Assembly: GCA_020891255.1 (NCBI GenBank)
Contig: BQFW01000007.1
Location: 2,666,001-2,730,000, forward strand
Length of the DNA: 64,000 bases
Direction: 5' to 3'
Source: Entomortierella parvispora E1425
Lineage: Eukaryota; Fungi; Mortierellomycota
Below the pieces are notes generated by a model. That model did not search any database. It saw nothing but the letters and a program-made list of their open reading frames with translations, and was not told where the DNA came from. Made by a program: the position numbers and the translations under genes. Shown here piece after piece: positions 57,492-64,000 of this stretch. Within the stretch, counting starts at the first letter, position 1, and every line of letters starts with the position of its first letter.

Positions 57492-57574
57492 TGGTAGAAG
57501 TGGGATTTGAACCCACGCCTCTCTCGAGACCGCAACTTGAGTGCGGCGCCTTAGACCAACTCGGCCATCCTACC
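57492..57574 (-). tRNA. tRNA-Leu(CAA), intronless
   Basis: The minus strand reads GGTAGGATGGCCGAGTTGGTCTAAGGCGCCGCACTCAAGTTGCGGTCTCGAGAGAGGCGTGGGTTCAAATCCCACTTCTACCA. It has acceptor stem GGTAGGA/TTCTACC, anticodon stem CCGCA/TGCGG with loop CT-CAA-GT, a long variable arm and a GTTCAAATC T-loop. A T4 run follows at 57484-57487. Confidence 0.96.
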
Positions 57575-57588
57575 CTGTTTGATGATTT

Positions 57589-58088
57589 TGTCGTGAATCA
57601 GACTGCTTTTATCCCCGCCAGCTCCGCGTCTGATCACATGACTTACGATCACCTGACCGCCGACACGCCTGATGTTGTTGCGCGCCCTCATTGCACTTGT
57701 GCCGCGCGTCATCGTCGTTGTCGACTACCCTCAATCGTGTATACTCACGAACGGAGCATTTCATGTTTCTCCGACATTAACCTACCAACCGTTGCCAATC
57801 AAAAGCTTGTCTCCACGCCGGTCGACCAAGCTCTTTGAAACCTCGGACGTTAGGGCCCCTATTCCAGAATAGTCATAAGCCCTTCACTATTTATTTCCAT
57901 AGTGTCAGCAGTATAGTCTCACTTCACTACCTTCAGTATATAAGTAGCTCTGTATCGAGACTTAGAACGGCATCCTTTCTTTGCCCTTCCATCTCGATTA
58001 CAGTCAAGGTAGCTGACTGTGGTGCCCAGTGTAGAAGAACACGCTCGACACACCCTAAGGATCAGTCGTGATACCGAGAGTCACGACA
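57589..58088 (+). repeat. 5' LTR (500 bp)
   Basis: It begins TGTCGTGA and ends TCACGACA (8-bp terminal inverted repeat). A TATATAA motif lies at 57937-57943. No difference from the 3' LTR was found by eye. Confidence 0.98.
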
Positions 58089-58092
58089 AATT

Positions 58093-62500: not shown

Positions 62501-63228
62501 CCCATTTTTATGGCCCGTTGGAAGTGATCCGTATTACGCCCTTGTCGACTTATCAGCTCCGCTGGGGAGATGGTGAGTTGAAGACGGACTTAGTACACCA
62601 AGACCGTCTTAAGCGTGCTTATCCGCCAGATGAAGCATCTGCACGCCGTGCTTGGGTCACTAAGACAAAGCACACCATGGAGCAAGCCAACGACAACTCT
62701 GACGATGGTCTTCCAATTGAAAGCCGCACTGAGGAGGAACAGCGCGTGGAGGAGGCCCTCGCTCTTAGAACCGCCAATGAAGATTACCTTGCCCGTCGCG
62801 ATCAACTTGGCACTTACGAACCGCCTATGATGGGTTCCGCCGCTGAAGCTGCCCGCGTGTACAGACAGGCACTTGCTGCTTCTGCCCCGAAGCCTCGTCG
62901 CCGTGGCCAACGTACTCGCGAACCCAGAGTCAATCAGTTGCAGGCAGGCCGAGGACGGCCTGAAGCCTGTGGGGGGAGTGTCGTGAATCAGACTGCTTTT
63001 ATCCCCGCCAGCTCCGCGTCTGATCACATGACTTACGATCACCTGACCGCCGACACGCCTGATGTTGTTGCGCGCCCTCATTGCACTTGTGCCGCGCGTC
63101 ATCGTCGTTGTCGACTACCCTCAATCGTGTATACTCACGAACGGAGCATTTCATGTTTCTCCGACATTAACCTACCAACCGTTGCCAATCAAAAGCTTGT
63201 CTCCACGCCGGTCGACCAAGCTCTTTGA
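59431..63228 (+). CDS. pol: Pol: protease C-terminal half, reverse transcriptase, RNase H, integrase (HHCC, DDE, GPY/F-like); no chromodomain
   Basis: Motifs are [52 protein letters not shown], H-x4-H...CKPC, [24 protein letters not shown] and FYGPLEV. The frame is +1 relative to gag. The TTG start in the track is not a likely real initiation site. Confidence 0.97.
   Translation: [1265 protein letters not shown]
62971..62978 (+). other. Polypurine tract
   Basis: GGGGGGAG lies immediately before the 3' LTR TG. Confidence 0.85.
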
Positions 63229-63478
63229 AACCTCGGACGTTAGGGCCCCTATTCCAGAATAGTCATAAGCCCTTCACTATTTATTTCCATAGTGTCAGCA
63301 GTATAGTCTCACTTCACTACCTTCAGTATATAAGTAGCTCTGTATCGAGACTTAGAACGGCATCCTTTCTTTGCCCTTCCATCTCGATTACAGTCAAGGT
63401 AGCTGACTGTGGTGCCCAGTGTAGAAGAACACGCTCGACACACCCTAAGGATCAGTCGTGATACCGAGAGTCACGACA
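62979..63478 (+). repeat. 3' LTR (500 bp)
   Basis: Same sequence as 57589-58088. The LTR-internal ORFs in the track (57672/63062 and 57835/63225) translate identically. Confidence 0.98.
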
Positions 63479-64000
63479 ATTTGGAGAATATTTGGTTTTT
63501 TATGAATCAGAAAAATATTGTGTACGTGACTCTCTATGTACGTAATTTTATGATCACGTGATATATATTCATTGGTTTTGGTGGCAAATCGACGCGCGTG
63601 AATGCAAATGTCAACCAGCAACGTCCCCAAGGGCGCTTCAACTCTGTACATTAGCAAGATCCTGCAGCCTATGTATCTTGAGGGGAGGTCTTGACTTTTA
63701 ATGTGCTGCACTGGTATACCAGGCCGTGCATCAGGAAGTCGTCCCTCTATTGCTGTTCGATCGAACCTGAATCGATCGCGTATCTTCATTACTTCTCTCC
63801 ATTGTCAGTTCTTCGGACCTACTTTTACACCGATCAATATATAAAACATATAGTATTCTATTCCCTGTAGTCAATGCACACATTAACTCCGATTGATCTC
63901 ACCACCTCCACTATCGAACTGAACTACGGAACATGGTCCCTTTCTCAATGCAAAAAAAACCTTTTCCTACATCAGCTCCGCGCGCTCGAGATTCCAGACC

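Follow-up and report, generated by a model that had tools for sequence, protein, structure and literature searches.

What has placed a Ty3/gypsy retrotransposon 14 bp upstream of a transfer RNA (tRNA) gene in an early-diverging fungus? The question is raised by a 64,000-nucleotide stretch of the Entomortierella parvispora E1425 genome (contig BQFW01000007.1, positions 2,666,001 to 2,730,000), called the window below. An earlier note, written from the letters of the window, had proposed the element as a candidate for targeting the genes that RNA polymerase III (Pol III) transcribes. The reading that best accounts for the data, with a probability of about 0.85, is that a recently active Ty3/gypsy family has an integrase that places copies narrowly upstream of tRNA genes; a TFIIIB-type mechanism and an origin independent of Ty3 are less certain parts of it.

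All annotated copies adjoin tRNA genes

The complete long terminal repeat (LTR) retrotransposon occupies 57589-63478, between 4-bp duplications of ATTT, and the tRNA-Leu(CAA) gene beside it is the sole tRNA that ARAGORN finds in the 64-kb window. The LTR ends are TG...CA; an additional A beyond them matches on both sides by chance. The features of the insertion site are as follows.

57492-57574, minus strand: tRNA-Leu(CAA), the target gene, with its mature 5' end at 57574 (ARAGORN; Rfam RF00005, 58.3 bits)
57585-57588, unstranded: left target-site duplication ATTT, at -14 to -11 relative to the tRNA 5' end (sequence reading)
57589-58088, plus strand: 5' LTR, 500 bp, TGTCGTG...CACGACA, identical to the 3' LTR
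62979-63478, plus strand: 3' LTR, 500 bp, identical to the 5' LTR
63479-63482, unstranded: right target-site duplication ATTT (sequence reading)

The earlier note had put the tRNA 5' end at 57574 on the minus strand and the LTR start at 57589, and ARAGORN, Rfam, and repeat comparison return the same positions. Reading the sequence bears out its 14-bp gap, with the ATTT duplication counted in, and the divergent arrangement of tRNA gene and element. Its guess of a Mortierellaceae-like host was also right: Pol is 99% identical to an Entomortierella parvispora protein.

Family members were collected as a 90% identity cluster of Pol. The cluster holds 12 proteins, all from assembly GCA_020891255.1, that map to 10 places on eight contigs. 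The ten loci were fetched with 10 kb on each side, and the gaps between tRNA and LTR were measured from the Rfam 5' ends. A tRNA gene lies on the opposite strand, immediately to the left of the 5' LTR, at 10/10 loci. The gap is 7-35 bp with a median of 15 (n = 10; 7, 14, 14, 15, 15, 15, 20, 20, 22, and 35).

L001: Leu-AAG, gap 15 bp
L002: Asn-GTT, gap 35 bp
L003: Met-CAT, gap 20 bp
L004: Glu-CTC, gap 15 bp
L005: Cys-GCA, gap 7 bp
L006: Met-CAT, gap 20 bp
L007: Asn-GTT, gap 14 bp
L008: Lys-CTT, gap 22 bp
L009 (the window copy): Leu-CAA, gap 14 bp
L010: Ser-AGA, gap 15 bp

The E. parvispora genome contains 192 nuclear tRNA genes in 38.66 Mb (PMC8759367). A randomly placed insertion would land in the 35 bp upstream of a tRNA gene with a probability of ~1.7e-4; therefore, ten such insertions out of ten are far beyond chance. 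The 5' LTR is always the one beside the tRNA gene and the element is transcribed away from it; a single orientation in all ten copies has a two-sided probability of 0.002. The earlier note had said that the adjacency would be a chance event if other copies lay at random distances from Pol III genes. Each annotated copy was inspected: all have the same orientation and lie upstream of a tRNA gene at a distance of 7-35 bp, so the earlier note's proposal of a Pol III-targeting element holds for the whole annotated family. No solo LTR, 5S gene, or U6 gene was found in the ~290 kb of fetched sequence. These data make it almost certain that the family targets integration to tRNA genes.

The ten insertions at ten different tRNA genes are independent events. 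Perfect 4-bp duplications, all distinct, flank eight of the nine complete copies (GGAA, TGGA, TCTA, TTGA, ATTG, ATCT, ATTT, and AAGT). The copy at L003 (from 9207 of that locus) is missing its 3' part, and fragments of other retroelements come after it. Joint spread of a tRNA gene and the element, whether by segmental duplication or with the tRNA carried by the element, is hardly credible. The ten targets have eight anticodons (Asn-GTT and Met-CAT are represented by two genes each), the spacings vary, and the flanking genes are different at 10/10 loci. The tRNA is not part of the element, because it lies outside the duplications that border the LTRs. Together, these observations refute spread as a unit.

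Purifying selection is the other way in which such a distribution might arise: integration would be random or weakly biased, and all but the harmless copies upstream of tRNA genes would have been removed. The genome is gene-dense, with genes every 1-3 kb at the fetched loci, and surviving copies alone are observable, both of which lend this idea some plausibility. However, the two LTRs of each pair differ at 0-2 positions; therefore, the insertions are young and selection has had little time. The same loci offer many other intergenic positions, and selection leaves the ~15-bp window, the single orientation, and the near-constant motif spacing described below unexplained. We consider this explanation highly improbable, and targeted integration remains the preferred reading.

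Two loci contain further features of the targets. At L006, two tRNA-Met(CAT) genes (7875-7947 and 14218-14290) face apart in an inverted duplication and have nearly identical upstream sequences. The element lies 20 bp from one of them and the matching site of the other is empty. At L008, an RNase MRP RNA gene (8610-8944, plus strand) lies ~200 bp from the targeted tRNA-Lys, and the copy itself (9243-20420) is broken by a nested chromovirus whose Pol (14156-17047) has SH3_Tf2-1 and Chromo domains.

The insertion point is aligned with upstream promoter-like elements

Nine empty sites were rebuilt by deleting the element together with one of the two duplication copies. Longer flanks were then aligned either on the insertion point or on the tRNA 5' end, the information in 60 columns was summed, and the gaps were permuted 5000 times among the sites. 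Column information was 20.0 bits when the sites were aligned on the insertion point compared to 15.0 bits on the tRNA 5' end, and the observed value was reached by 5 of the 5000 permutations. Two elements recur in the alignment. A TATA-like box lies ~18-25 bp upstream of the duplication in most sites (CATAGA, CATATA, CATAAG, TATAGA, CATAAA, and AATAAA). In eight of nine sites, a CACGTR box begins 43-51 bp upstream of the duplication (46-48 bp in most); the distance from this box to the tRNA is 55-78 bp. The 4-bp duplications have no shared consensus. The better alignment on the insertion point indicates that position is set by the distance to the upstream promoter-like elements rather than by the tRNA body or by local sequence. 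In the window, these elements have been displaced to the far side of the retrotransposon.

63483-63561, minus strand: displaced native upstream region of the tRNA-Leu(CAA) gene (alignment of the nine reconstructed empty sites)
63496-63504, minus strand: TATA-like box in the displaced region, antisense CATAAAAAA (reconstructed empty sites)
63522-63529 and 63554-63561, minus strand: CACGT boxes in the displaced region (reconstructed empty sites)

Most tRNA genes in the fetched loci, occupied and empty alike, have boxes of the TCACGTGA type, frequently two or three, in the ~100 bp upstream of them (63522-63561 in the window). A TATA-like box lies ~24 bp downstream of them. A CACGTGA box followed by a TATA-like box looks like the general upstream architecture of tRNA genes in E. 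parvispora. A literature search returned no description of a CACGTGA/TATA-like architecture upstream of tRNA genes.

TATA-dependent Pol III promoters start transcription ~25-30 bp past the beginning of the box. Combined with the spacing of the TATA-like box, this distance predicts a start just after the duplication. Ty3 inserts 2-3 bp upstream of the start site (PMC8632968), and Tj1 inserts 1-10 bp upstream of tRNA start sites (PMC4600332). The predicted geometry of insertion and start in E. parvispora is thus the one reported for Ty3 and Tj1.

These comparisons suggest a model for target choice. The integrase would direct new copies into a narrow window upstream of tRNA genes with the 5' LTR toward the tRNA. 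TFIIIB (TBP/Brf1/Bdp1), the Pol III initiation factor that binds upstream of the start, would hold the intasome in place, and the intasome would cut a few bp upstream of the Pol III start, as Ty3 and Tj1 do. By analogy with these elements, TFIIIB is somewhat favored as the tether over another promoter-bound factor.

Targeting could also be real and the tether something else: TFIIIC on the A and B boxes, Pol III itself, or a factor bound to the CACGTGA box. We regard this as improbable. The constant 46-48 bp between the CACGTR box and the insertion in most copies points toward a box-bound factor, but L001 was targeted with no CACGTR box within 80 bp upstream. CACGTG boxes occur commonly in Pol II promoters as well, yet a tRNA gene is the neighbor of every one of the ten copies. 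The other candidates have precedents: TFIIIC influences the orientation of Ty3, TRE5-A loses its targeting to the tRNA target gene through mutations that affect TFIIIC, and Ty1 relies on a Pol III subunit (PMC5911963). The distance to the tRNA body, and hence to box A, is anywhere from 7 to 35 bp in E. parvispora, an argument against TFIIIC as the ruler. The spacing of the TATA-like box fits the distance from TBP to the start and speaks for TFIIIB over these alternatives.

The integrase has a clade-specific C-terminal extension

The integrase was examined for a domain that could serve as the tether. Pfam did not detect a Chromo domain at E <= 10 in the C-terminal 292 residues. The best solved-structure match is Ty3 Gag-Pol (7q5b_A, 370 bits), and the integrase aligns to it through the SH3-like domain (residues 18-369 of the integrase segment). 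The SH3-like domain is followed by an extension of ~110-120 amino acids that ends in a basic tail. The extension is conserved across the clade relatives P0002-P0011, which are 52-78% identical over Pol. A profile of the extension searched against 1.84 billion representative proteins recovered only five clusters, all of them integrases or integrase fragments of the same clade; thus, the extension is not a detectable captured host domain.

An AlphaFold model of the SH3-like domain plus the extension has a predicted local distance difference test (pLDDT) score of 71, a moderate value, and shows a beta-barrel followed by four helices. Foldseek comparison with the PDB matched the barrel only (murine leukemia virus integrase C-terminal domain, Tudor, PWWP, and SH3; E 0.002 or weaker) and found no match for the helical part. 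A whole-integrase AlphaFold model built from 11 sequences was discarded because its mean pLDDT was 47. As far as Pfam and the moderate-confidence model show, no chromodomain, canonical or vestigial, is found in this integrase. The clade-specific extension is a candidate targeting module, and the tether to TFIIIB would probably be this extension after the SH3-like domain and not a chromodomain.

The earlier note had said that this integrase and that of Ty3 both lack a functional chromodomain. As far as Pfam and the model can show, the statement holds for the E. parvispora integrase, but it is out of date for Ty3. The vestigial chromodomain of Ty3 integrase contacts Brf1, so Ty3 is not free of a chromodomain, and its C-terminal domain binds TBP (PMC8632968).

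The LTR edge carries an A-rich box

The fixed orientation places the same LTR edge next to every target gene. Read antisense, the outer (U3) edge of the 5' LTR has an A-rich box, GATAAAAG, 18-25 bp from the junction, in the register of the displaced native TATA-like box. The box scores 3.7 bits on a matrix derived from the nine native sites, which ranks in the top 1% of the 12-mers of the element, compared to -3.6 bits for the opposite LTR edge. In two relatives, the corresponding place in the LTR edge reads TGAAAAG in one and TTAAAAG in the other. The A-rich box is a possible cause of the fixed orientation, a proposal in which our confidence is low; it could equally be a subterminal integrase-binding site. 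A fuller scenario, doubtful when taken whole, is that a chromodomain-less Mucoromycota lineage evolved start-site targeting on its own through a helical-looking integrase module, and that its fixed divergent orientation works through an LTR-edge TATA-like box that replaces the displaced promoter element and keeps the target gene working.

Element anatomy and coding frames

The window copy has the hallmarks of a Ty3/gypsy element: TG...CA LTRs with a target-site duplication, the order protease, reverse transcriptase, RNase H, and integrase, a zinc knuckle, a primer-binding site (PBS), and a polypurine tract. Its internal features are listed below.

58093-58106, plus strand: PBS TGGTAGCAAAGGAC, starting 4 nucleotides past the 5' LTR (sequence)
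58099-58211, plus strand: 35-bp tandem repeat in the leader, beginning within the PBS region (repeat comparison and copy alignment)
58239-59576, plus strand: gag open reading frame, 445 amino acids, with Retrotrans_gag and zf-CCHC and a CCHC zinc knuckle at 59232 (Pfam, motif positions)
59559-59561, plus strand: GGG run that shifts pol to the +1 frame relative to gag, within the protease domain (ten-copy alignment)
59562-62976, plus strand: pol in the +1 frame, encoding the remaining protease, reverse transcriptase, RNase H, integrase, and an SH3-like C-terminal domain (Pfam, motifs, and the Ty3 match)
62614-62976, plus strand: integrase C-terminal extension past the SH3-like domain (clade alignments)
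62971-62978, plus strand: polypurine tract GGGGGGAG, which abuts the 3' LTR (sequence; identical in all copies)

The C-terminal part of gag already codes for the first part of the protease, including its active site (DNGA at 59433). Pfam finds RVT_1, RNase H, Integrase_H2C2, and rve in that order in pol, and the motifs are intact (YLDD at 60547, DAS at 61021, HHCC at 61606, and the integrase residues D at 61798, D at 61984, and E at 62083). The SH3-like C-terminal domain of the integrase is at ~62460-62620. The pol frame remains open for 250 nucleotides into the 3' LTR (62979-63228), which would add ~83 residues. The length of this tail varies among copies and it is not conserved in relatives; therefore, it is probably not functional.

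The primer tRNA predicted from the PBS ends in ...CUUUGCUACCA with an A1:U72 pair. An A1:U72 end is the pattern of eukaryotic initiator tRNA-Met, the putative primer; a matching gene was not among the sequences reached. One relative (L037) has a PBS identical to that of the window element, and a Rhizopus relative has a TGGTAGCA PBS. The leader repeat has three units in the window copy and four others, and one extra unit in five copies.

The ten copies differ at the junction of gag and pol. GGG is present at 59559-59561 in 6/10 copies, including the window copy, so that gag stops and pol continues in the +1 frame in mid-protease. GG is present at the same site in 4/10 copies, which have one continuous gag-pol frame through it, and in L002 and L010 the whole frame of 1626 amino acids is open. 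The GGG form has spread to new sites, as has the GG form, which indicates that the GGG form uses +1 frameshifting or slippage, or is mobilized in trans.

An LTR of 500 bp is unique to the window copy, and the LTRs of the other nine are 608-609 bp long. Indels of 9, 12, and 87 bp, each divisible by three, account for the differences, and identity elsewhere is ~95%. The window also contains a snoR38 C/D-box small nucleolar RNA at 50820-50900 on the minus strand.

Comparison with known tRNA-targeting elements

The family was compared with elements that insert near tRNA genes. Ty3 of Saccharomyces cerevisiae is likewise an LTR retrotransposon with the order protease, reverse transcriptase, RNase H, and integrase and a TGGTAGC-type PBS. 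It also inserts within ~15 bp upstream of the mature tRNA, near the expected start and downstream of the TFIIIB site. The pol of Ty3 is in the +1 frame relative to gag, as in the window copy and five others. The target-site duplication of Ty3 is 5 bp, and that of the E. parvispora element is 4 bp. The Brf1-binding vestigial chromodomain of Ty3 (PMC8632968) contrasts with the clade-restricted extension, modeled as helical, in E. parvispora. Ty3 is found in both orientations (PMC5911963), whereas the E. parvispora family has one only.

Tj1 of Schizosaccharomyces japonicus is a Ty3/gypsy element that also inserts 1-10 bp upstream of tRNA starts in a fixed orientation, a trait that its authors knew from no other wild-type LTR element (PMC4600332). 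Tj1 and its target tRNA gene have the same direction, whereas the E. parvispora element points away. Tj1 also differs in having a stop codon between gag and pol with no frameshift, and in its ascomycete host.

DGLT-A of Dictyostelium and other dictyostelids is a Ty3/gypsy element located 13-33 bp upstream of tRNA coding regions, a position that is regarded as convergent (PMC5006619, PMC5911963). Its host is an amoebozoan and it inserts in either orientation. No full-length DGLT-A copy remains in D. discoideum (PMC5911963), in contrast to the identical LTR pairs and intact frames in E. parvispora. Tca8/beta of Candida albicans and Tyl3, Ylt1, and Tyl6 of Yarrowia lipolytica are Ty3/gypsy elements found 5-30 bp upstream of tRNA genes (PMC5911963), but their hosts are all Saccharomycotina.

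The nearest named relatives are elements of the Mucorales (Rhizopus, Mucor, and Absidia), which are ~40% identical and belong to the chromodomain-less side of the tree described below. They have similar LTR ends (TGTC.TG...CACGACA) and a similar TGGTAGCA PBS, but they do not have the C-terminal extension of the E. parvispora clade. As far as tested, the family acts like Ty3 and Tj1 but appears to lie outside their lineage.

Relatives and origin of the family

A FastTree phylogeny was built from 54 Pol sequences, with Ty3, Tj1, DGLT-A, and Skipper outside the set. A branch with support of 100 splits chromodomain-bearing and plant Tf2-like elements from a chromodomain-less group. The latter includes the Mucorales elements and the clade of the window element, which has its own support of 100. 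As a proxy for the placement of Ty3, sequences were scored in bits against its chain 7q5b_A.

Window element: 370 bits
Rhizopus relative P0031: 403 bits
Metagenomic chromovirus P0055: 550 bits
E. parvispora chromovirus nested in L008: 495 bits

The comparison of 370 bits with 495-550 bits places Ty3 nearer to chromoviruses than to the window element. Published Ty3/gypsy phylogenies agree in placing Ty3 nearer to chromoviruses. The earlier note had raised the possibility of an independent origin; the grouping with the chromodomain-less Mucorales elements and the bit scores favor it and do not prove it. On these sequence comparisons, tRNA targeting likely arose independently of Ty3.

Relatives in other genomes were searched for tRNA neighbors. 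A metagenome scan with the integrase alignment recovered one close relative (L011, 82% identity) that is without 5' flank and has ~17 nucleotides of 3' flank. No tRNA was found in the 12 metagenome contigs scanned, and a scan of viral contigs for relatives gave no matches. The contig of the relative P0005 (L037) wraps around the element with a repeat spacing of 5823, and hence it has no flank. A chromodomain-less relative with 42% identity occupies 9432-14678 of the fetched Rhizopus delemar locus (L038; CH476737.1), where a tRNA-Ile(AAT) gene is at 14755-14828. The element is 76 bp beyond the 3' end of the tRNA and is not flanked by a target-site duplication; a 65-bp indel distinguishes its two LTRs. 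This single case is a lead that tRNA association may be wider in this lineage.

In a 2018 review, the fungal Ty3/gypsy elements that target Pol III genes come from Saccharomycotina and S. japonicus only, and its table contains no Mucoromycota (PMC5911963). Our search of the literature on Mortierella, Mucorales, Mucoromycota, and early-diverging fungi found no description of a tRNA-targeting retrotransposon, in agreement with the earlier note, which knew of no described example in such a lineage.

Observations that weigh against the model

Several points count against an independently evolved family tethered to TFIIIB. The sample consists of annotated full-length or near full-length resident copies, and solo LTRs, fragments, and unannotated copies elsewhere fall outside it. 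The duplication at L007 is imperfect and this site is also without an in-register TATA-like box, and L001 is the site without a CACGTR box within 80 bp upstream of the insertion. The 7- and 35-bp gaps imply unusually short and long tRNA leaders under a start-site model. The TFIIIB tether rests on geometry and analogy, with Pol III starts that are predicted. The GGG copies, six of ten and the window copy among them, require a +1 frameshift within the protease or help in trans. The independent origin rests on the bit-score proxy, with Ty3, Tj1, and DGLT-A outside the tree.

Implications

Targeting of tRNA genes is the textbook example of how a mobile element finds a safe place in a compact genome. 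To our knowledge, the targeting mechanisms have been worked out only in budding yeast (Ty1 and Ty3) and partly in Dictyostelium. The E. parvispora family is a further, probably independent case in an early-diverging fungus. Its copies are young and apparently intact, its integrase tail is different, and its orientation is strictly fixed in the direction opposite to that of Tj1. Three questions become testable with it: in how many different ways proteins can dock an intasome on the Pol III initiation complex, what determines the orientation of integration, and whether an element makes up for the promoter elements that it displaces. In addition, the insertion sites are markers of likely Pol III start sites and bring out an upstream architecture of tRNA genes in E. 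parvispora.

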